In this document: positions 14,064 through 59,453 of the stretch, one piece after another
Numbering within the stretch: position 1 is the first letter of the stretch
Layout: every line of letters begins with the position of its first letter
NCBI RefSeq assembly: GCF_021869535.1
Contig: NW_026262581.1
Location: 92,504,001 to 92,568,000, forward strand
Reading direction: 5' to 3'
DNA from: Mytilus californianus
Taxonomy: Eukaryota
DNA: 64,000 bases
Notes under the pieces: model-generated
The model's database searches: none
What the model was told of the DNA's origin: nothing
The model's input: only the letters and a program-made list of their open reading frames with translations
Translations under genes and position numbers: made by a program

Positions 14064-15281
14064 ATGCCAGCAGGACCTGTTAAACGTAGAATACTTATTT
14101 GTGGCGGTGGTAATGGAGCACACTGTTTATCTGCTCTCGCAGCTTCTCGTGAGAATTTGGACGTCAATGTTTTAACACTGTTTCAAGACGAGGCTGAGAG
14201 ATGGACAAAACTTTTGGAAGACAATGATTTAAAAATCTCTGTGACTTACAACGATGGCAACGAATCAGAAATTCATTCCAAACCATCGATTATCACAAAA
14301 GATCCTGCAAAAGCCGTGGAAGGAGTTGACATAGTTTTCCTCGTTGTCCCTGCATTCGCTCATGCACAATATTTTACAACTATGACACCTTACCTACAGC
14401 CAAATACGTTAATAGTGGGATTACCAGGTCAGGCAGGATTCGAGTTTCAATGCAGGAGTATGTTGGGCAAAAAGGCAAGTACCTGCACTATTGCGTCGCT
14501 TGAATCCTTACCATGGGCATGCCGAATATTAGAGTTTGGAAAGCATGTACAAATTCTTGGTTTTAAGGAATCACTAGGAATGTCCTTTTTAACTGGTAGC
14601 GAATGTAATCTTTCATTTCCAGTCGTAGAAACAGTTCAGGAAATTCTTGGAGAAAAGCCAAAAATTCAAGTTATTCAAAATTATATAGCAGTTAATTTAA
14701 TGGCAAAATCTATTATTCACCCGCCATTGTTATACGGTAAATGGGGAGACTGGGACGGAACCCCAGTACCCGAAAAACCTTTATTTTATCAAGGTGTTGA
14801 CGACAGGCAGGCAGAACTATTGTCGAAAGTCAGTGACGAAGTACTAGCAACTGCAAAAGAACTTGAGAAATTAAGGAACAGATGTGATATGTCAGAAGTA
14901 ATTCACATCTTTGATTGGTACAAAATTTATTATAAAGATCAGGTTTCGGACAAAAGTTCTTTAATGATGGCAATGCGAACAAATAAAGCATATGATGGAC
15001 TTGTACACCCAATGACTTCTACTGAGGATGGGAAATTTGTTCCCGATTTTACTTACCGTTATACATCAGAAGATGTACCATTTGGTCTTGTAGTAATGAA
15101 GGGGATTGCTGAAATTGCAGGAGTTGAAACACCAACAATTGACACAATCATTGCATGGGCACAGAAAAAGCTTGACAAAGAATACATTGTTGGTTCGGAA
15201 CTTACTGGGAAAGATATCGCTTCTGCAAGAGCTCCTCAATCCTATGGCTTGCATACTATAGATGAACTTTTTAACATGTAA
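14064..15281 (+). CDS. odh: Opine dehydrogenase paralogue 1 (octopine/tauropine/strombine family), 405 aa, single coding exon
   Basis: CGGGNGAH Rossmann motif, VPAFAH, LPGQAGFEFQ, ESLPWACR, MAKSIIHPP (catalytic His), PLFYQG, DWYKIYY, YRYTSEDVP (Arg/Asp). Acceptor TTTCAG ends at 14052, so the likely start is ATG 14064 rather than the ORF-track start at 13980. Amino-acid substrate not determined. Confidence 0.95.
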   Translation: MPAGPVKRRILICGGGNGAHCLSALAASRENLDVNVLTLFQDEAERWTKLLEDNDLKISVTYNDGNESEIHSKPSIITKDPAKAVEGVDIVFLVVPAFAHAQYFTTMTPYLQPNTLIVGLPGQAGFEFQCRSMLGKKASTCTIASLESLPWACRILEFGKHVQILGFKESLGMSFLTGSECNLSFPVVETVQEILGEKPKIQVIQNYIAVNLMAKSIIHPPLLYGKWGDWDGTPVPEKPLFYQGVDDRQAELLSKVSDEVLATAKELEKLRNRCDMSEVIHIFDWYKIYYKDQVSDKSSLMMAMRTNKAYDGLVHPMTSTEDGKFVPDFTYRYTSEDVPFGLVVMKGIAEIAGVETPTIDTIIAWAQKKLDKEYIVGSELTGKDIASARAPQSYGLHTIDELFNM

Positions 15282-18600: not shown

Positions 18601-19964
18601 GCTCAAACGTCAAGCTGCAGACCAATATATGACGTCATTCATTCTGTTAAGCAATACATGAGAAAAGTGGAACAACAATATGTGTTTTCATTAAAAATAT
18701 TGAAAACCAAAGTATCGGCAAACATGAAGTAGATGTCTGACATTTTGCTTCTTGGTGTGACTAGCTGATGATTTACGACTTTACATACAGAAAAACACAA
18801 TACCTGACTAATTTAGTCATGGCAAATGACGAATCAAAGCAGCAATTAATAAAGAGGCGGAAGATACCAAGGGGATATGTCAAAAAAAACGAAAGACGAC
18901 AAAAAGACAAACAGATACACACACACACATAATTTTATTAACCATTACCCCATGAAGGGCAGATTAATTAAAATGTAATTATTCATAACATAATAAACAA
19001 ACTAAACAATAATGGTTTATTAGAGTAATAATTGTATTGATTGTATGAAATAAAAACACTTTTAACTCAATCTGAAAAAATAGAGAAAGAAAAATAATGT
19101 CAACATTTATGTATAATATATTTCTTTCTTTTATATTGAGGATATCCAGCTAGATTTGGACAAAGAGAGACAACTCCATTCTTCTTATATTTCATATGTG
19201 GGTTTTAGTTCACATATGATATTTGATACAACTTTTAAAACATAACTTTCTTAATTCATTAGTCATTAACCATAAAAATTTATTCTCTATTATATATATA
19301 TTATACACGAAAGGATAATGACCTGATACAACAGTTCTTATTCAATTTAAGTTCAGCAGATCTGACAATACAAAATTAGAGATGTACTGGTCATTATATT
19401 AGAATACTGAATGGAACTTCTGCGTGTCGAAGCGTTTACTTGTGATAAATGCAACAAAAAATAAAACGAAGGTATGATTCAGTCCACTTTGTTTGCCCCC
19501 TAAAATGAGAAAATCAAAAAGTATAATAAATATACCAAATAACACCCCTCTGATGTTCCATAAAGTAAATCTGACACATATTGATATTTTTATCCTTATA
19601 TACTTGCTTTAGGACTTCAAACATCTTGCTTTTTTATGCAAAACCGCCAAAATGACCTCATTTTGAGAGCTAGTCCTTCATATTTGAATATGAGCTTAGA
19701 CTTTTCCCAAAAAGATGTCTTATACAAAGATGTTAATGTTATTTGGGGTAAGGTCTTGGATCATACTTAATTTTGCCAAAAAACTACACGTAGAATAGTC
19801 ATTTTAAGTCAAAAAAGTAAATTTCTACATGTTTATAACGCCACAGTGGCATCAAAACTGACATTTTTGTACAATAGTGTAAAGATTTTAATAGGCCTTT
19901 TCCTTTATCAATGAACTAACCTAATTTTGAAAGGATGTAGGATTTTACTATTTTTGTTATTTAA

Positions 19965-20630: not shown

Positions 20631-23594
20631 TTAAGGGCCAAATATTGGCTCTTAGCATACTTCGTCTACTAAAAGTCCAAAAATATATCATATCTGAAAG
20701 CAATGTTATTATCCGCGCAACTATGTCCTCAGTTTATGACCAAGTCTGGAAAAAGAACCCTCAAAGGTTTTTAAAGCAAAGTGCTAGTTTTTAATATAAA
20801 AGCTTTGTATTACATGAACCTTGCATTTTTTAGAAAGTAGTCTGTCTTTCATTATGTTCTTCGTTGGATAAGCGTGATTCACACTCGGGGCAATACTTGT
20901 TGTAGACAGTTTACAACTTCCGTTATCACAAATATTTTTATGTAAACACAGTTGTCACTATAAACATTGCAAACTGTCTCTCCATCTTCCTTTATGCACG
21001 AATTCCTTTTTTTTTCTCATTTGGGAAAATGTAATGCATACTATTTACTCGTTTGCGATTTTTTTTTTTTTTTGTCTTTAATACTTGTAAGAACACAAAT
21101 ATTAGTAATCAAGAGGTTGTTCTCATCATTGGAAGAACAAAGCTTGTCAATGTGAGTTAGGGGACAACCTTTTGACTTTCGGGTGGGGGAAGGGGGAGGG
21201 GCAGGAGGATTTTGAAAATGAATATTCTGGCCTGGTAAGAGCTTAATAATAATAACTTTGCCCAAGACAGGATGAAAATGAGTATTCTGCAACACCAACC
21301 GTTCCTTTATTTCTTGTATTTCTATAATAGCTGTACGTATCTATTATAATAGGCAAAAGAACAGCAATAAAAGAATTGATATAACTTTTTTTTTGTACAG
21401 TGTATGTAAAATGACCTTCCAGAACTGAAAGAATTATTCCTTTTTTGGATTTGGGAAAGAAGAAAAGCTGTTGGGTGTTATAAAAGTTTCGGAATAACTC
21501 CAGTTCGAGTAAAAATGAGTCACGGATCAACTCAAAGTAGTCCCATAACATATGACCTTGGGAGCATTTATTTTCTATTTCTATTTATTTTTGATTTATT
21601 CTTTTTACTTATTTTGCTTCTTTTTTTTTTATTATTTACTATTTTTTTATTATCAATGTGCCTTCAAAAAAATGAAAATATCAGTATAAAAACGTTAAAA
21701 ACTGAATAAGAATGTGAAGTCATATGCTTTAGGACTACAACTCAAAGGTGATAAAGAGGAATTAAGCTATTATAATGTCAACATCGCATTTTATACATGT
21801 TCGTTTATCATAAAGAGCCAGCGTAGTCGTCTGCAACTGATTGATAAATCCTCCCCAGTATCGATTGTGACTTTGACATTGCTATAAGGACGGTTGAAGG
21901 TTGAAGCAATCAGTAAGGTTTCCTAAGGTAAGTTGATGATCTTTATATTAATCTAATTTAACGTACCCGTCATACAAATATTAGATACACCTTGAGGTCG
22001 TTTTCCCGAATGGATGTATCTAACTTACACCAAGATATTATTGTCAATGTAGAATGATAGTTATCAAAGTTAGGAGAGGGTCTTTCAGCGGTCCAGATTT
22101 GATCATATGTTATTGAAAGACATGACAAATGTAGGGTATCAAATTTCATTTAACGACATCTTGGTGTAAATATACACATAGTTGAAAATCTTGTATGTGT
22201 TATAATAGATTCACACATAGTTTGTGAATATTGGTAACAATGATAAATAACTGTTTACTGCTACAAAATCGAGGCATATGTTGTTCTCACGTGTGTATGT
22301 CGGCACGTAATCTGTACAAAATATTATTTTCAGAACTTTACAAACCAAATACTATATTTTGTCAGTACGTTGTCTTGTGTATATAAGATATTAGTGTAAA
22401 CAAAGGCCCGATAAAAAAGGTACTCGTGATTAAGGTTTACACACGGGAAGAAATTTGAGGTCTGCCATTATACTCAAGGTAAACAAAAATTCCACAATAA
22501 AAAAAAGAGGAAATCCTTCATACCTAACCTTTTTCTTAAGGAAGAAACCAAACCCACACATATATATATATATGTGTATGTGTTTTTATTTGGCCTAATC
22601 ACATTACTATTTGTGTAACGAGATAAACTTTCCCCATTCAGTACTTTCTTATCAGTGCGATTTAAGGGTAGTTTTCGGGTCCTTTAAGTAAAACTGGGTC
22701 AAAACTTTTTTTATCCTGTGACATATGCTACATGGGCGCTACACCTTAAGTCGACGAGTCCCGTATCAATAAAAGTGCCCTTTGTAATTGACTTTAGACC
22801 TCAAGGTCTAATAATTATCTTTGATTAGTTTTTTTTAATTTTGTTTGTCCTACCTAAAACCGCATTCTTGCTTTCCACGGATAAAATTTTCAATGCACAA
22901 GCATAATTCCCGAGGGGGGGGGGGGGGGGGGGGGGGAGGGTAATGCACCGGCTCCTCATATTATGAATTGCTAAATATCGCAAAAATGATTAAGATACCC
23001 ACTCAAAACCATATTTTTTCCTAGTTACCATGATAAGATCGTTCTAGTGTGTCATATGCTTTGTCCCCGGAGAATATGTTCTGCATCTTTCATATCATTT
23101 ATAATAATAATTTTGAATCTTATTCCTGTCCCCTCCCTCAACCAAATATATATTATTCATGACAAAACCTTTACATTGCACCATAGGTTTTGACCTTAGC
23201 TGTCTGCCCCTAATATCGTTATTTTTTTATATAAATATAAACATGTACACAACTGGTTCCGATAATCACCTTAAACAATCATATATTTTGAATTGCAACG
23301 ATATGACCTTTCAAGTGCACCAGTCGTTTTGTTCCTGGGGGTTATGCCACGCCCCTCTTATATCTTAGATAGTTTGAATTACTATACCACTGTTCAAAGT
23401 TCCACACATAAACCATGTATATTCGAAATTGCATTACCAAGGTCTTTCTAGTGGACTTATTTACCGAGAAAGAAAAAATCTTCCCATAGGCGTAATAGAC
23501 AAAGATCAAATAATGTAAATGGATTTGTTTGTCCGAATATAAACTAGCAAACAGGAATGAATATACTGGACGTTATTGATAATTTCGAATTTCA

Positions 23595-23720
23595 TTTTTG
23601 TCTCGCCTCGACGTGGTCACGAAGGCCACTGCATGCTGTTTCCAGCTGCGGCGGCGGCCTCGTCAACAATGTAATATTTTGTGATTAGGTCAGTTAAAGC
23701 GGAGCCTCTAGTGGTATATC
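23595..23720 (+). mobile_element. Short HINE-like remnant
   Basis: TTTTTGTCTCGCCT start, (GGC)n tract and GGAGCCTCTAGT end resemble HINE termini. Confidence 0.4.
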
Positions 23721-23984
23721 AATGGTATTTGGTATACATTTGTATTACAATTTAGCATGTGCTCATCTCGTTTCCATGGAGATTATTTAGCCCCGCCCCA
23801 CAGTCATGGTCTGTTGACTTTTTTTTTGTACAGTTTAAAGGGAACCTCTAATGTTTGGTATGCAGTTGTGTTAGCATTTGCCTTCTCATATATCCATGGA
23901 GATTTCCTTGACTTTGAAACTTTTGCATTACAAGTAGTTGACATGTCAATGTTAAGATCTAAAAGTGTCTCAGTACAATGTGCT

Positions 23985-24203: not shown

Positions 24204-24613
24204 GTCCGTTCAAAATGAACCACTCGTGGCCAGTCAATGATACATAATTTTATCTATGTCTCAACAGTTTATCTAAATGATCTGAATAGAAATATCGGAT
24301 GTATGCTTAATACATATAAAAGTAGATTTATTAACAAGTAGTTTTAGGCTTGTAAAAAGATGTTAGCTTTTATGCATCGTTAAACGCCATAGAAAACGAG
24401 ATATATAAAAAGTTATGAAACATATTAAATACGACAAAAAATTGCACAAATAACAAAATCGTCCACGAAGGAAAACAATATCAACAACATTTTGTTAGAT
24501 AGCATCCTTTAGTTCTTTAGTTCAGCCATAACATATAGTAAAAACAGTTGATTAAATAAATGTTCACTAAGCATTCCTTTTTTATTTTTCTAGGTTCTTC
24601 AGCATTATACAAC

Positions 24614-25819
24614 ATGTCTGAAAAACGACGAATACTTGTGTGTGGCGGTGGAAATGGAGCACATTGTTTGTCTGCACTCGCAGCTTCTCGGGACAATTTA
24701 GACGTACATGTTCTGACATTATTCCAAGACGAGGCGGAGAGATGGGCTAAACATGTTGAAAATGAAAATATGAAGTTAACAATAACCAAACAAGATGGAA
24801 CTCAATATGAAATATTTTCGAAACCTTCACTTATAACAAAAGATGCTGCTAAGGCCATGTTTGGGGTACAGATTATTTTTCTTGTAGTTCCAGCATTTGC
24901 TCACGCTCAGTATTTTTCCGCCATTGCGCCACACTTACAGCCAAATACACTAATTGTTGGACTCCCTGGTCAAGCTGGATTTGAACTTCAATGCCGTCAC
25001 ATAATTGGTGACAAAGCAAGCAGTTGTACAATCGCAGCATCAGAATCTTTACCATTTGCATGCCGAATTGTTGAATTTGGGAGACATGCCCGGATACTCG
25101 GACTGAAAGATTCCCTTGGCATGTCATCTTTAAAGGGTAAAGCATGTCAACTATCCTTTCCTGTGGTAGAAACAATTCAAGGAATTCTTGGAGAATACCC
25201 TAAATTAGAGCTACTCAAGAACTATGTTGCAATAAATCTGATGGCGGATGCTAATGTTCATCCTCCAATGATGTACGGAAGATGGGGAAACTGGGACGAG
25301 AAACCATTGAAGGAGGAACCCTTATTTTACCAAGGTGTCGATGAAAGACAAGCAGATCTTCTATCAAGGGTCAGTGAAGAATTGCTTGCAACTGCAAAAG
25401 CAATCGAACAAAAAAGAAAAGACGTTGACATGTCAGAGGTTATCCATTTGTTCGATTGGTTTAAAATTCATTATCCAGATCAGATAACTGACAAAAGTTC
25501 CCTAATGATGGCCATGAGAACGAATAAAGCATATGACGGTCTGGTACATCCAATGACAAAAACTGATGAGGGTTATGTCCCAAATTTCAACTATCGGTAC
25601 ACATCTGAAGACGTACCTTTTGGAATGGTAGTTATGAAAGGAATTGCCGATCTAGCGGGTGTATCTACCCCAACCATGGATGAAATACTTGCATGGGGAC
25701 AACAGAAACTAGGAAAAGAATATATAGTTGGTTCAAAACTTACAGGAAAAGATATAGGATCAGCGAGGGCACCACAATCATTCGGAATGACCAGTGTAGA
25801 TGAACTTTTTGATATTTGA
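24614..25819 (+). CDS. odh: Opine dehydrogenase paralogue 2, 401 aa, single coding exon, divergent substrate pocket
   Basis: CGGGNGAH, LPGQAGFELQ, ASESLPFACR, MADANVHPP, DWFKIHY, YRYTSEDVP. Acceptor TTTCTAG ends at 24593; likely start is ATG 24614. Confidence 0.95.
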   Translation: MSEKRRILVCGGGNGAHCLSALAASRDNLDVHVLTLFQDEAERWAKHVENENMKLTITKQDGTQYEIFSKPSLITKDAAKAMFGVQIIFLVVPAFAHAQYFSAIAPHLQPNTLIVGLPGQAGFELQCRHIIGDKASSCTIAASESLPFACRIVEFGRHARILGLKDSLGMSSLKGKACQLSFPVVETIQGILGEYPKLELLKNYVAINLMADANVHPPMMYGRWGNWDEKPLKEEPLFYQGVDERQADLLSRVSEELLATAKAIEQKRKDVDMSEVIHLFDWFKIHYPDQITDKSSLMMAMRTNKAYDGLVHPMTKTDEGYVPNFNYRYTSEDVPFGMVVMKGIADLAGVSTPTMDEILAWGQQKLGKEYIVGSKLTGKDIGSARAPQSFGMTSVDELFDI

Positions 25820-25956
25820 AGAGGCTATTCTTGTATTTCAGTAAAAGTATTATAAAACTTTCTAGATTAAGCTTTAATTATGTAAACGGGTTTGTTTGTT
25901 CGTATATAATTATAAAAAATTTAATGCATTTTGTAGTATTATTGATAGGAACATTA

Positions 25957-32270: not shown

Positions 32271-32415
32271 TCATGATATACATCAAGAGTTTGGCACTGC
32301 ATCATACACATTCTTTACGCCAGTAAGATTGTAGATTTTCAATGAATTCTAAAAATAAACTTTGTTATAATGAAAATTAAGCTCTAAATGGCTAAACTTA
32401 CTAAGAAATAAGATA

Positions 32416-33652
32416 GGAGCAAGATGAGTTGTGAGATATTCGTCAATGATATAGCAACCAAACGACACAGAAGTAAGATGAGTTGTGGTGTACATCAATG
32501 ATACAGCAACCAAACGACACAGGAGTAAGATAAGTTGTGGTGTATACACCAATGATACAGCAACCAAACGACACAGGAGTAAGATGAGTTGTGGTGTAAA
32601 CATCAATGAAACAGCAAACAAACGACACAGGAGTAAGATGAGTTGTGGTGTATACATCAATGATACAGCAACCAAACGACACAGGAGTAAGATGAGTTGT
32701 GGTGTATACATCAATGATACAACAACCAAACGACACAGGAGTAAGATGAGTTGTGGTGTATACATCAATGATACAACAACCAAACGACACAGGAGTAAGA
32801 TGAGTTGTGGTGTATACATCAATGATACAACAACCAAACGACACGGGAGTAAGATGAGTTGTGGTGTATACATCAACGAAACAGCAACAAAACGACACGG
32901 GAGTAAGATGAGTTGTGGTGTATACATCAATGATACAACAACCAAACGACACAGGAGAAAGATGAGTTGTGGTGTATGCATCAATGATACAGCAACCAAA
33001 CGACACAGGAGTAAGATGAGTTGTGGTGTATGCATCAATGAAACAGCAACAAAACGACACAGGAGTAATATGGGTTGTGGTGTATACATCAATGATACAA
33101 CAACCAAACGACACAGGAGTAAGATGAGTTGTGGTGTTTACATCAATGAAACAGCAACAAAACGACACAGGAGTAAGATGAGTTGTGGTGTATACATCAA
33201 TGATACAACAACCAAACGACACGGGAGTAAGATGAGTTGTGGTGTATACATCAATGATACAACAACCAAACGACACGGGAGTAAGATGAGTTGTGGTGTA
33301 TACACCAACGAAACAGCAACAAAACGACACAGGAGTAAGATTAGTTGTGGTGTATACATCAACGATACAACAACCAAACGACTCAGGAGAAAGATGAGTT
33401 GTGGTGTATACATCAATGATACAGCAACCAAACGACACAGGAGTAAGATGAGTTGTGGTGTATACATCAATGATACAACAACCAAACGACACAGGAGTAA
33501 GATGAGTTGTGGTGTATGCATCAATGATACAGCAACCAAACGACACAGGAGAAAGATGAGTTGTGGTGTATACATCAATGATTCAGCAACCAAACGACAC
33601 AGGAATAAGATGAGTTGTGGTGTATACATCAATGATACAGCAACAAAACGAC
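32416..33652. repeat. Minisatellite, 54-bp unit, about 23 copies
   Basis: Unit GAGTAAGATGAGTTGTGGTGTATACATCAATGATACAGCAACCAAACGACACAG. The 54-bp period explains the 18-aa periodic ORFs on both strands. Confidence 0.95.
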
Positions 33653-34227
33653 ACAAACAAACAAAAAAATATCTAGCGGGCAACACAGTCTTTATTTAAA
33701 TATACATTTGATCATGAAGCGTGGAAATTTTTAAAACCCACAAAAATAAGAAAACAACCATTGTTTATACATTTATATACTAGAATTTAGTTTTATTAAA
33801 TATTATTTCAGCTGAAATGTCTATGAAACATTTACCATTGGACGTTAACAAAAAACAAGCCTGCTTCAAATTGTCTCCTTTGATTTGTACATATTTTAGG
33901 CGAGTACAAAATCGTTACAAAACAATAAACTACGTTATAAGTTGACTTATTAGGAACTGCATTCCATCTTATGAAGCGATTCATAAATAATATTTGTGTA
34001 TTGACTTGACATAATATACGGTTGAGGCTTAGAAACTGGGGAAATACGAAGCTTTGTCGATCATTTTGTCCCGTGTTGTGCCGGGCTAGCTTTCAGTTAT
34101 CTAATATTGAGATTATTGATACACAGTAATAGCCCTGATAATTACCGGTAGTGACCACTGTCGCAAAAGAATGACCTCGTATTGTTATGACCGACTCCAT
34201 TTGAGACAAAAAGATGGTTTTCTGCAC

Positions 34228-51441: not shown

Positions 51442-52656
51442 ATGTCTTCGAACACATTAAAACAAAGAATACTTGTCTGTGGGGGAGGAAATGGTGCACA
51501 TTGTTTATCCACGTTAGCTGCCTCACAGAAAAAATCAGAGGTACATGTTCTGACTTTATTTCAAGACGAGGCTGAACGTTGGACAAAACTGTTGGAGGAT
51601 TCCGATGTAAAATTGACAATAACCGATCTAGATGGAAGCCAGCGAGAGCTATTTGCAAAGCCAACCCTGATAACGAAGGATTCAGAAATAGCGATGGCTG
51701 GTGTTCAAATCATTTTCCTTGTCGTTCCAGCTTTCGCTCATGCACAATATTTTACGGCTATAGCACCACACCTTCAACCGAATACACTGATTGTTGGGCT
51801 TCCTGGGCAAGCTGGATTTGAATTTCAATGTAGAAGTATACTAGGTAACAAAGCGAGCACGTGTACTATAGCATCATTAGAATCACTGCCGTGGGCGTGT
51901 CGTATATTAGAATTCGGTAGACACGCTCAAATCCTTGGGGCAAAAGAATCTTTAGGTATATCCTACATTAAAGGAAAGTCGTGTAAATTACCCTTTCCAG
52001 AAGTCGAGTCCATTCAGGAAATTCTTGGTAAAAAACCCATAATTGAAAAAATACAGAACTACATTGCAATCAACTTGATGGCAAAATCTATGGTCCATCC
52101 TCCCATGCTATACGGAAAATGGGGAGACTGGGATGGAAAACCTTTACAGAAAGAACCATTATTTTATCAAGGTATAGATGAAAGACAAGCAGGATTGTTA
52201 TCTAAAGTCAGTGACGAATTGTTAGCTACTGGGAAAATGTTGGAAGAACTCAAAGAAGGCATAGACATGTCACAAGTAATACATATTTTTGATTGGTATA
52301 AAACTTACTATACAGATCAAATAACTGACAAAAGTTGTCTAATGATGGCCATGAGAACGAATAGTGCGTATGATGGACTTGTTCATCCCATGATTAAAAC
52401 TGAAGAGGGCTACATTCCAAATTTCAATCACCGATACACAACCGAGGATATTCCATATGGTCTTGTTGTAATGAAGGGCATTGCTGAAATTGCCGGAGTA
52501 GATACTCCCGTCATGGATGAAATTATTGCATGGGCACAACAAAAACTAGGCCAGGAGTACATCGTGGGATCGAAGCTTTCAGGGAAAGATGTTGACACAG
52601 CCAGAGCACCTCAGTCGTATGGACTAAAAACAGTCGATGAACTTTTTGATACTTAA
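51442..52656 (+). CDS. odh: Opine dehydrogenase paralogue 3, 404 aa, single coding exon
   Basis: CGGGNGAH, LPGQAGFEFQ, ESLPWACR, MAKSMVHPP, DWYKTYY, HRYTTEDIP. Acceptor TTCTTACAG ends at 51432, 9 nt before the ATG. Confidence 0.95.
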   Translation: MSSNTLKQRILVCGGGNGAHCLSTLAASQKKSEVHVLTLFQDEAERWTKLLEDSDVKLTITDLDGSQRELFAKPTLITKDSEIAMAGVQIIFLVVPAFAHAQYFTAIAPHLQPNTLIVGLPGQAGFEFQCRSILGNKASTCTIASLESLPWACRILEFGRHAQILGAKESLGISYIKGKSCKLPFPEVESIQEILGKKPIIEKIQNYIAINLMAKSMVHPPMLYGKWGDWDGKPLQKEPLFYQGIDERQAGLLSKVSDELLATGKMLEELKEGIDMSQVIHIFDWYKTYYTDQITDKSCLMMAMRTNSAYDGLVHPMIKTEEGYIPNFNHRYTTEDIPYGLVVMKGIAEIAGVDTPVMDEIIAWAQQKLGQEYIVGSKLSGKDVDTARAPQSYGLKTVDELFDT

Positions 52657-55248: not shown

Positions 55249-57174
55249 ATGGAGAGAGTAATATCGCCTATCAACTGTATCGAGCATCCAAAATTGCTCT
55301 TGAGTTATTATTGTTCTAGTCACGATACAGTATTCTGTGATAATTGCAAAACTGAAATACATGGATCTTGTGCTGAAGTCCACACTGTTAAAAATGCATC
55401 CAAGTCAATCAGTGATGGTGACATTGTAAAAGCCCTTGTATCCCGTATAACGGAAGCAAAGGAATCACTATCAGGTACAACCGACAAACTTGAAGACAAC
55501 ATAGCTACTTTAAGCCGACAATATGACAGAATTAAGCAAAATATTTTCACTGCACGGCAATCTATCAATGAGTATTTTGATTCTCTGGAGGCAGAATTGA
55601 CCAATGTTGTGCATGAACGCTGCATTAAGGGCGTAGAAGAGAAAATAGTAGAACTGGAGAGAAGGAATTATACTTTAGACCAATGGGAAGACGATCTACA
55701 GTTAGCCATGCGCAATGATGATGAAGAAATGCTGTTTACAGTAGTAAAGATCTTAAGTAAATTACATAATGATATGGACTCATATTTAAATGACATTTTT
55801 AAAGAAATAAAAATAAAGCATGTTAGATGGACCCCAATTAGAACAGACAAGGCGTCAATAGTATCCTTTGTTGGCAAAGTGTCTTTGAGCGAAATGTCAT
55901 CCACAATACAGAGACCAAGCTCTGGTAAATTTACGAAAGCCTTGACTCGCGAATCAAGTCGGGTTTCTCCAAGGAGCATTGGAGCCGTTAATATCACACA
56001 GGAAAGTAAAACAGAGCAAGGTCTAGAGAAGGTGTCAATAAAAACTAAACAGGGATGGGATGAGATTTCTAGTAAAGTTAAGGACGAGGAAGTAGAAATC
56101 ACCGGTGTTAATGCGGGCTTAAATCGGGCAAGTACAAAAAACGACATGAAATCAACTGAAACGTCCACGGTTATTGATTTAGAAGATGGAAGTTTGAAAG
56201 GCACCAACGTGTCTAATGACACAAATAACCGAACGGAAATAAAAGTAGATGAGAAAATTTGCCAAGAAAACGATAGTGAGCAAAACCAACACATTGGGAA
56301 TTCACTTAACCAAGAGAAAGGCGATACTGTTCCTGATGGTGGCAGAAAAATGACAAGTACGAGAGGGTCTAGTCGATGTAAACCTGAGCCAACCATTTAT
56401 AGTGCAAAGTCTAAATTTGAAGCAACTAACTTAGGGCGGAAAAGTAGCACAGAGATGCAGAGAGGATTATTTTTGAGAAATGATGGTATGCTATTCATGG
56501 ACAAGACTAACAAACACATTTTTATATGCAACAAAGAAGGGCAGATGCTGCATAAAATTAGCCTCAATTATGAACCCCTGGATGTTACAATGTTGGATGA
56601 GGGTCGTGCAGTGGCAACTATAGGAGACAATGGAATTCAAATAGTCAACATACACAGCCTACGAAAAGAAAAAGCTCACGATGTCGGGGGATTCTGTGGA
56701 GGGATCACATCATATAAAGGACAAATAATTGTAAGTGTAGATAAGAAGTTGCGTTTACTCGACGCTTTGGGGTATACACTGCGTCGTTTACAACATGATG
56801 GGAGCGCCTCATTTGTCTGCTCAGATAATGCGGGTAAGATATATTATACCGACTCAATGGATCATGCCGTTCATTGCATAGCATGGTTTGGAATCCCAGT
56901 GTTTACCTACAGCAACAAGGGCTTAAAGTGTCCAATGGGAATCGTTGTTGATTCTGATTGGTTCGTCTACGTGGCTGGGTTTGAATCGTGTAATGTGCAA
57001 AAGCTGTGGCCAAATGGAAGATATCATTCTGACTTTTTGACTGAAAAGGATGAATTGCATGAACCATCATCTCTTGCATACAACGAGAATGAACATGAAA
57101 TTTTAGTTATAAGTGACAATAACCAAACTGTGGAATTGTATGATCTGAATGATGGCATTCGACATCAACAGTAG
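55249..57174 (+). CDS. RING-less TRIM-like protein (B-box, coiled coil, low-complexity linker, NHL/beta-propeller), 641 aa
   Basis: B-box2 CIEH-x7-YCSSHDTVFCDNCKTEIH, helical coiled-coil region, and C-terminal NHL-type repeats (EPLDVTML, GKIYYTD, LKCPMGIVVDSDWFVYVAG, EPSSLAY). Acceptor TTTTAG ends at 55230 with an open in-frame stretch to the ATG, so an upstream coding exon cannot be excluded. Confidence 0.85.
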   Translation: MERVISPINCIEHPKLLLSYYCSSHDTVFCDNCKTEIHGSCAEVHTVKNASKSISDGDIVKALVSRITEAKESLSGTTDKLEDNIATLSRQYDRIKQNIFTARQSINEYFDSLEAELTNVVHERCIKGVEEKIVELERRNYTLDQWEDDLQLAMRNDDEEMLFTVVKILSKLHNDMDSYLNDIFKEIKIKHVRWTPIRTDKASIVSFVGKVSLSEMSSTIQRPSSGKFTKALTRESSRVSPRSIGAVNITQESKTEQGLEKVSIKTKQGWDEISSKVKDEEVEITGVNAGLNRASTKNDMKSTETSTVIDLEDGSLKGTNVSNDTNNRTEIKVDEKICQENDSEQNQHIGNSLNQEKGDTVPDGGRKMTSTRGSSRCKPEPTIYSAKSKFEATNLGRKSSTEMQRGLFLRNDGMLFMDKTNKHIFICNKEGQMLHKISLNYEPLDVTMLDEGRAVATIGDNGIQIVNIHSLRKEKAHDVGGFCGGITSYKGQIIVSVDKKLRLLDALGYTLRRLQHDGSASFVCSDNAGKIYYTDSMDHAVHCIAWFGIPVFTYSNKGLKCPMGIVVDSDWFVYVAGFESCNVQKLWPNGRYHSDFLTEKDELHEPSSLAYNENEHEILVISDNNQTVELYDLNDGIRHQQ

Positions 57175-58100: not shown

Positions 58101-59453
58101 ATGTTACCGAAAAACAGACATATGGCCTCTTCCGAACATTTGAAAGTCCCTACTATGTACTGGTTACCTAAATTGCACAAAAAACCATTTAAATTCCGTT
58201 TCATCTCCGCATCTAGTAAGTGTTCTACTACTAATCTATCCGTGCTTCTAACTACCTCCCTTACTACTATCAAAGAACTTGTTATTAACTTTTGTAATAA
58301 AGCTTATGAAAATAATGGTATTAATTATTTTTGGAGTGTTAAAAATTCTTTAGAGGTTTTAGACAAAATACATGCTTTTGATGGTCCTTTTAATTCTGTT
58401 GACAGTCATGATTTTTCTACTCTCTATACTACACTTCCACACAATCTTATCAAGAAAAAGTTTTCATATTTAATTAAATGGTCTTTTGAAAAATCTCATT
58501 ACAAATTTATTTGCTGTAACTCGTTTAAAGCCTTTTTCTGTAACGAAAAAGGAAAGTATGCTAGATACACTTACTGGAAATGTGAAGATATGATTGAAGC
58601 TTTAAATTTTCTCCTGGACAACATATATGTACGTTTCGGCGATAGAGTGTATCGACAAGTAGTAGGTATTCCTATGGGCACTAACTGCGCCCCTTTAATA
58701 GCAGATTTATTCCTGTATTGCTATGAATCTCAGTTTATGACCAAACTCAGTAAAGACACGTCATTGATACATTTGGTTGATACATTCAACAATACCTTCC
58801 GTTATCTAGATGATATTTTTTCGTTAAATAATCCAGAGTTCTCTAAATATACTACCGAAATTTACCGAATAGAACTTACTTTAACTAAATCTAACATAAA
58901 CAGCAGTAGTTGTCCTTTTCTGGATTTGGACATTTCAATCTCTAAAGGAAAACTCCATACGAAAATTTACGACAAAAGAGACGATTTTTCATTCCATATT
59001 GTTAATTTTCCTTTTTCAGACGGCGATGTTCCTTTGGCTCCATCATACGGTGTATATATATCCCAACTCGTTCGTTATGCCCGTGTGTGTAGTAATGTCA
59101 TAGATTTTAACGAACGTAATCAATGCATCACTGGTAAATTATTAAATCAAGGATTTCGTTACCATAAATTACGTAAAACATTTTCTAAGTTCTTTCATAG
59201 ATACAAAGATTTGATTAGTTAATTTGGCTGTACTTGTAGAAAACTCATTAAAAACGGTATTTCACATCCTAAATTTTACGGTAATATTGTACTTAAAGCG
59301 CGGAAATCACTATGAGATCCGTGTAAACTCATCGAACCTTTAAACAAACTTATTAGTAAAGGTTATCTTACCAATGTTGTAATTAGATCTTTGAATATAG
59401 TTTACATTGGCACTAATATCGATTTTGTCATCAGCAAATTAAAACATGACTAA
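58101..59453 (+). mobile_element. 5'-truncated Penelope-like retroelement RT (Naiad-like layout: RT is C-terminal)
   Basis: YWLPKLHK..FRFI, DFSTLYT, GIPMGTNCAPLIADLFLY, FRYLDDIF, TKIYDKRDDF, SYGVYISQLVRY. The frame continues past TAA 59220 and TGA 59313 to TAA 59451 with no GIY-YIG domain. Confidence 0.9.

Follow-up and report, generated by a model that had tools for sequence, protein, structure and literature searches.

The window, the whole 64,000-nucleotide stretch of Mytilus californianus DNA analysed here (RefSeq GCF_021869535.1, contig NW_026262581.1, positions 92,504,001 to 92,568,000), carries three opine dehydrogenase genes on the + strand, P1, P2 and P3, each with an unbroken coding sequence. 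Judging by sequence comparison, P2 is probably an arginine-using octopine dehydrogenase (ODH) that arose from an alanopine/strombine-type ancestor with lysine at position 208 of the scallop numbering, converging on the ODHs of cephalopods. It is an unremarkable, previously deposited representative of the known mollusc opine dehydrogenase family: the protein is 94.5% identical to UniProt M1FK93 (AFP55364.1), "D-octopine dehydrogenase [Mytilus galloprovincialis]", and its 90% cluster holds genes of M. edulis, M. trossulus and M. galloprovincialis together with M1FK93. A preliminary description of the window had proposed that P2 may produce an opine for which no mussel enzyme has been assigned. 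Arginine, the cationic amino acid that abounds in mollusc muscle, is the obvious cation for its pocket. Octopine is a known Mytilus end product (PMC11084901). With a near-identical orthologue already deposited as an ODH, the claim of a new opine is unsupported and an unassigned product is unlikely.

Substitutions in the amino-acid pocket of P2

Residues of P2 were mapped onto the ODH of the scallop Pecten maximus by HMMER alignment to PDB 3c7a and by MAFFT alignment with Q9BHM6. The amino-acid site of the scallop enzyme is located at a helix-kink-helix motif, and the guanidinium of agmatine is held there by the side chains of Glu142 and Trp278 and by the backbone of Met206, Ser207 and Tyr208 (PMC2924402). 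The segments around E142, M206-Y208 and W278 had been described beforehand as lining this site, which agrees with the structure except that Tyr208 acts by its backbone. The positions of the corresponding P2 residues are collected in the table below.

Every difference previously listed for P2 at sites where P1 and P3 agree is present in the sequence: EFQ is replaced by ELQ (24983-24991), SLESLPW by ASESLPF (with Glu144 and Phe148 inside the segment), MAKS(I/M) by MADAN, and WYK.YY by WFK.HY (Trp282 at 25457-25459, His286 at 25469-25471). The one-residue gap (EG-Y) common to P2 and P3 is likewise real. The charge reversal from Lys to Asp falls on codon GAT at 25247-25249, which encodes Asp212 and aligns to scallop Tyr208; RNA reads covering the codons of Asp212 and Ala213 at ~31x depth report no variant. 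As features of the P2 lineage, only some of the listed changes hold. S140A, W146F, K208D, S209A, I275L and Y282H (scallop numbering) are fixed across the whole lineage, and L141S probably belongs with them, having dropped below the filter because Lys208-type relatives vary at 141 (L/F/V). ELQ and WFK are not lineage features: the distant P2 orthologue P0002 does not have ELQ, and WFK is WYK in the P2 orthologues of M. edulis and M. galloprovincialis.

Comparison of the P2 lineage with 12 mytilid relatives of the Lys208 type gave only ten positions with fixed, diagnostic substitutions (129, 140, 146, 191, 198, 208, 209, 275, 282 and 334). Five of the ten lie within the 21 positions 140-146, 204-210 and 276-282 (Fisher p = 5e-5, for three pocket segments defined post hoc from the preliminary claim itself), so that the clustering noted there does go beyond chance. 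An AlphaFold2 model of P2 has a predicted local distance difference test score (pLDDT) of 94.7 and superimposes on 3iqd, the scallop enzyme-agmatine complex, with a template modelling (TM) score of 0.94 and a root-mean-square deviation of 1.8 A. In this model the kink between helices 204-209 and 216-224 holds Asp212, and Trp282 and His286 are one turn apart on the same face of helix 279-286.

Table. Positions of the genes, exons and pocket residues discussed (window coordinates unless stated otherwise; P2 numbering for residues of P2)
Feature	Position	Strand	Remarks
P1	14064..15281 (without stop: 14064-15278)	+	405 aa; Lys208/Ser209/Tyr282 type
Non-coding first exon of P2, 3' end	21907..21927	+	exact match of RNA read/contig loose ends
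5'-untranslated region (UTR) intron of P2	21928..24593	+	GT..AG, AG at 24592-24593; RNA reads and contig
Second exon of P2	24594..25900 (3' end approximate)	+	transcribed; RNA coverage
P2	24614..25819 (stop codon excluded: 24614-25816)	+	401 aa plus stop, one uninterrupted coding exon; open reading frame (ORF)
Interval of the preliminary description	24980..25475	+	P2 residues 123-287; holds all pocket segments
Glu144	25043..25045	+	scallop Glu142, guanidinium-binding side chain; same in P1, P2 and P3
Phe148	25055..25057	+	scallop Trp146; Trp>Phe fixed in P2 lineage
Asp212-Ala213	25247..25252	+	scallop Tyr208-Ser209; Lys-Ser in P1/P3; charge reversal
His216	25259..25261	+	catalytic His212; invariant in 55-sequence alignment
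Reference base A (Glu229, GAG)	25299	+	nearly invariant Gly of WG.WDGKP motif; G in RNA
Trp282-Phe-Lys-Ile-His286	25457..25471	+	scallop Trp278..Tyr282; Trp conserved, Tyr282>His fixed in P2 lineage
P3	51442..52656 (without stop: 51442-52653)	+	404 aa; Lys208/Ser209/Tyr282 type, sister of P2 lineage
L004-L007	G000 C132:119886638-119917635 and C154:8.66 Mb / 18.73 Mb		four further intact paralogues of the assembly
L008	L008 1438-2907 = G000 C1:11066820-11067998 region	-	490-aa open frame

A tandem duplication inside the mytilid Lys208/Ser209/Tyr282 group, a type that includes deposited alanopine dehydrogenases, would have given rise to P2, and the six pocket changes listed above as fixed would then have been established around the amino-acid site. 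In enzymes of the Lys208 type the lysine may fill or neutralise the distal pocket beside Glu142, admitting only small amino acids. Its replacement by Asp would open the pocket and add a second acidic group close to Glu142 and Trp278, favouring the long cationic side chain of L-arginine, and P2 would then convert pyruvate and arginine to octopine. Within this scheme we infer the interplay between Lys208 and Glu142, the orientation of Asp212 and the identity of the substrate.

Position 208 and the repeated change of three pocket residues

The enzyme names used in the following comparison are those given by the depositors. Position 208 is Asp in the deposited ODHs of Sepia, Loligo and Doryteuthis and Tyr in those of Pecten and Mizuhopecten. 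Lys208 occurs without exception in the other deposited enzymes examined, those named alanopine, beta-alanopine, tauropine or opine dehydrogenase: the tauropine and beta-alanopine dehydrogenases of Cellana, alanopine dehydrogenases 1 and 2 of Crassostrea, the alanopine dehydrogenase of Fusitriton and the opine dehydrogenase of Haliotis; it is the default of enzymes for small amino acids, neutral or anionic. As enzymes for neutral and anionic substrates carry it alike, alanopine and beta-alanopine dehydrogenases included, the earlier idea that Lys suits the anionic taurine was not borne out. Its counterpart, a preference of the Asp type for cationic substrates, agrees with the deposited cephalopod ODHs, which have Asp at the same position. 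Among deposited enzymes the lack of Lys208 goes with the name ODH, an empirical correlation of this analysis and not an established criterion. P2 lacks it (Asp212) and departs from the Lys208 type at all three of 208, 209 and 282, with Asp, Ala and His; P1 and P3 have Lys, Ser and Tyr. Glu142 (112 of 120 family members of all kinds) and Trp278 (115 of 120) are kept whatever the substrate and therefore do not discriminate ODHs.

We consider it unlikely that P2 is still a strombine/alanopine-type isozyme in which the pocket changes tune kinetics, tissue use or regulation but leave the class of amino acid as it was. Such a role would suit an enzyme that is 70-73% identical to P1 and P3 (70-72% among the three genes) and nested among Lys208 enzymes, the more so as scallop Tyr208 acts by its backbone and Glu142 and Trp278 are conserved family-wide. 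However, the nearly invariant Lys208, Ser209 and Tyr282 have been replaced together, repeatedly and in independent lineages, and a reversal of charge at the helix-kink-helix that binds arginine would hardly be neutral. The changes in P2 have moreover been under purifying selection since before its split from P0002, in which the Asp/Ala/His/Phe set is retained while synonymous sites (dS) are saturated.

A maximum likelihood tree of 120 sequences, built with a quick search that calls for caution over its support values, placed the P2 and P3 lineages as sisters (support 99), as the preliminary description had supposed, and nested both, together with P1, in a clade of mytilid enzymes that carry Lys208 (support 99). 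Scallop ODH falls in a basal clade of its own, and the cephalopod ODHs in another. The scallop-type clade does not include P2, which was placed in the other main clade with support 100 and has MADAN...WFKIHY where the scallop type has MSYSF...WY.EYY. Holding P2 and the cephalopod ODHs together, a grouping chosen after the tree was seen, made the tree 88.5 log-likelihood units worse (approximately unbiased [AU] test, p-AU 0.00094). Since a joint clade is rejected, the Asp208 shared by P2 and the cephalopod ODHs is convergent. A single ancient origin of Asp-type enzymes was considered and rejected on the same tree and p-AU value; at least seven changes are required for Asp208 on the 120-sequence tree.

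Six Asp-type lineages were compared with their Lys-type sisters. Position 209 also changes in five of the six transitions from Lys to Asp (three times from Ser to Ala), and position 282 in four (three times from Tyr to His, once from Tyr to Cys). Six positions changed four or more times, one of them by construction, against ~0.6 expected under a rate-homogeneous null. The Asp-type enzymes of the pearl oyster Pinctada repeat half of the ten diagnostic changes of P2 (K208D, S209A, I275L, Y282H and L334M), and the cephalopod ODHs share Asp208, Ala/Ser209, Leu275 and Met334 with it. The coupled change at 208, 209 and 282 is seen independently in no fewer than five lineages of molluscs, of which two are mytilid and the others pearl oysters, dreissenids and other heterodonts, and cephalopods. 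A divergent sister lineage of P2, P0011 and its relatives, reads LLGAPAIHTG at the helix-kink-helix; it has neither Lys nor Asp at the site, Thr-Gly in place of Pro-Pro, and the same change of Trp146 to Phe as P2.

We tentatively propose that the replacement of Lys208 by Asp, Ser209 by Ala, Gly or Cys, and Tyr282 by His, Asn or Cys may be a recurrent switch from alanopine/strombine-type enzymes to arginine-using ODHs, a reading that falls somewhat short of even chances. As far as the literature was checked, no description of it was found. In mussels the switch may have gone along with the loss of catalysis in L008, the ancestral gene of the scallop ODH type (see below). Opine dehydrogenases cluster by taxon and not by substrate (PMC11084901), and the substrate therefore cannot be read from a tree; if true, the switch would allow the class of substrate to be predicted by a sequence rule in a family whose specificities are reported not to track phylogeny.

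A pocket of this kind could also suit some amino acid other than arginine, cationic or unusual (such as lysine, ornithine or histidine), which would make the opine one unassigned in mussels. The combination of Glu144, Asp212 and His286 is unlike that of either scallop ODH (Tyr208/Tyr282) or cephalopod ODH (Asp208/Asn282), and the genome holds eight opine dehydrogenase paralogues against the three activities classically reported for mussels. Few substitutions are needed for a shift of specificity in this family, as Cellana grata shows: its tauropine (A9CQJ6) and beta-alanopine (A9CQJ3) dehydrogenases differ at only 20 sites and are 96% identical (PMC11084901). Ten of the 20 differences fall at 273-290, on the Trp278 helix, which therefore tunes the choice of amino acid. 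We nevertheless find a substrate other than arginine quite doubtful, given the deposited name of the P2 orthologue, the Asp shared with cephalopod ODHs, the abundance of arginine in mollusc muscle and the known production of octopine by mussels; no sequence feature of P2 points away from arginine.

Several observations weigh against P2 being an arginine-using ODH. M1FK93 and the cephalopod ODHs bear depositors' names. Scallop Tyr208 contacts the ligand by its backbone, so that the role of the Asp212 side chain is putative. Scallop ODH itself has Tyr at this position, which means that Asp is not required for the use of arginine. The co-variation of 208 and 282 is suggestive only (median p 0.06, independent-pairs test). 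Three other paralogues, L005-L007 (Gly208, His/Arg282), likewise do not have Lys208 and could be the ODH.

P2 as an expressed gene and its relatives in the genome

P2 looks to be a functional, expressed opine dehydrogenase under purifying selection. P1, P2 and P3 all match Pfam PF02317 (Octopine_DH) well over the cut-off; P2 scores 108.1 bits over residues 202-364 (gathering cut-off 30), and its HMMER match to the scallop ODH structure 3c7a has an E value of 2.6e-124. The dinucleotide-binding motif GxGxxG/A is present as VCGGGNGAH (residues 9-17), with C10, G11-13, N14 and H17 invariant across the 55-sequence alignment. In scallop ODH the catalytic His-Asp dyad and the Arg sensor are His212, Asp329 and Arg324 (PMC2924402), and P2 keeps all of these as His216, Asp333 and Arg328. 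The ratio of nonsynonymous to synonymous substitution rates (dN/dS), calculated pairwise between orthologues, is 0.10 for P2, 0.11 for P1 and 0.15 for P3 against M. edulis. Between the paralogues dS is saturated (2.3-5.9), and a branch-site dN/dS analysis would for this reason be low in power.

The P2 region (24592-25900) is covered at 14-41x in the stranded RNA run X21, a depth based on ~6% of the reads of that run, and the second exon is also covered by contigs of three further RNA runs (X1-X3). The loose ends at 24592 of 26 RNA reads and one contig match 21907..21927 exactly, with GT next at 21928; the joint has a two-base ambiguity, as AG stands at both sides. RNA depth past P2 drops between 25840 and 26006. 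An in-frame ATG at 24560 was considered as the start of P2 and rejected, as the intron acceptor lies downstream of it; this ATG is intronic, and ATG 24614 is therefore the start codon. Inside the same intron, the region 23669-23930 collects numerous RNA reads that join backwards, skip or continue in differing ways, a behaviour that suggests a dispersed repeat with many transcribed copies in other places.

At residue 229 the reference sequence encodes Glu in place of a nearly invariant Gly, the one feature that might mark P2 as inactive or decaying. Position 25299 is, however, G (Gly) in 29 of 29 X21 reads and in the contigs of X1-X3, and Gly is found there in every orthologue and paralogue, with all orthologues reading WGNWDGKP. 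The A at 25299 is an allele private to the animal that was sequenced, or else an error in the consensus. With the catalytic residues intact, transcription and splicing in evidence, and the low dN/dS and high pLDDT given above, decay of P2 is extremely improbable.

Eight opine dehydrogenase members were found in the M. californianus assembly, all with open frames over the whole match. P2 is 100% identical to database protein P0123, P1 is 95% identical to P0007 of M. galloprovincialis, and two other paralogues of the assembly are 100% identical to XP_052065156.1 and to M. californianus P0108. The nearest relative of scallop ODH in the genome is L008, 48.6% identical to the Pecten enzyme. In L008, His212 is replaced by Arg, Arg324 by Glu and Glu142 by Asn; its Rossmann motif reads CGSGEG, and its N-terminus is extended by about 75 residues rich in Lys, Glu and Thr. 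Lacking His212, Arg324 and Glu142, it cannot be the active ODH; on these residues it looks to be a catalytically dead or re-purposed one. No intact scallop-type ODH is present among the eight members, L008 being the only one in the scallop clade. Because L008 lacks the catalytic residues and Mytilus makes octopine, another paralogue must supply the ODH activity.

Of the four further paralogues, L004 is of the Lys208 type and L005-L007 are Gly208 types with His at the Gln118 position; in L006 and L007, moreover, the Glu142 position is occupied by Asp and position 282 by Arg. One of L005, L006 or L007, on another chromosome, could be the mussel ODH and leave P2 with a different role, since all three are without Lys208 and Tyr282 and are annotated automatically as "octopine dehydrogenase(-like)". 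We rate this as very unlikely: the names come from automated similarity, no deposited ODH has Gly208, the identity to scallop ODH is 40-44% against 47% for P2, and the substitutions at the Gln118 and Glu142 positions speak against it.

In M. edulis, an orthologue of P3 was observed at L012 18623-19832 (OY782956.1), 7.7 kb downstream of the P2 orthologue, with 86% identity to the P3 of the window over 320 aa. Its N-terminal Rossmann part is in another reading frame (ORF 18623-18919), and the gene is therefore either frameshifted or mis-assembled. The 90% cluster of P3 has no named member from M. edulis, M. galloprovincialis or M. trossulus.

Three further regions of the window showed long open frames. 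Those at 32349-33699 run on both strands over a tandem unit of ~16 codons (e.g. VSLMYTPQLILLLCRL on the - strand); this region is a minisatellite and not a gene. At 55249-57174 (+), an ORF of 641 aa has a weak N-terminal match to a B-box zinc finger (E 2.9e-4, below the Pfam cut-off) and may represent a TRIM-like gene whose coding sequence is one exon. The 373-aa ORF at 58101-59222 (+) carries a YLDD-like motif typical of reverse transcriptases, had no Pfam match at E 0.01, and is probably a retroelement relic.

Significance and comparison with known enzymes

No claim of a new mussel opine should rest on P2. The repeated, coupled replacement of 208, 209 and 282 would be a cheap and testable marker for an arginine-using class, and the convergent switches offer a natural set for mutagenesis. 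Such a marker would help in deciding which of the eight paralogues of M. californianus underlie the octopine, strombine and alanopine activities that are measured in mussels. We regard the comparative pattern as a modest, testable lead and not as a surprise.

The closest known protein is M1FK93 of M. galloprovincialis, which like P2 has 401 aa and the ASESLPF, MADAN and K-I-H-Y motifs; it differs in having WYK where the window has WFK, and Gly229 where the reference has Glu. The cephalopod ODHs compared (Sepia officinalis Q9BHK4, Loligo vulgaris Q9BHU3 and Doryteuthis opalescens Q9GNX6) resemble P2, beyond the shared residues named above, in keeping Glu142 and Trp278 and in not having Tyr282, and the helix-kink-helix of Sepia pharaonis reads LLADANVHPP against LMADANVHPP in P2. 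Unlike P2, they have Asn282 and not His, retain Trp146 and carry Gln in place of Glu122, at about 52% identity and in a clade of their own.

The Pecten maximus ODH (Q9BHM6; PDB 3C7A, 3C7C, 3C7D and 3IQD) has the same two-domain fold as P2 and the same His212, Asp329, Arg324, Glu142 and Trp278, but differs in Tyr208/Ser209/Phe210/Tyr282 as well as in its identity and basal position. The closest evolutionary relatives of P2 are the Lys208-type enzymes, represented by alanopine dehydrogenases 1 (I7HP94) and 2 (B5D5P4) of Crassostrea gigas, the Fusitriton enzyme (Q4R1C6), and P1 and P3 of the window. These agree with P2 in length, catalytic residues and a single-exon coding sequence in tandem. At 208, 209, 282 and 146 they have Lys, Ser, Tyr and Trp, against Asp, Ala, His and Phe in P2. 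The Cellana pair offers a parallel in that few substitutions on the Trp278 helix (275-285) accompany a change of substrate; unlike P2, however, both Cellana enzymes keep Lys208 and use small substrates, and their switch does not involve the helix-kink-helix.

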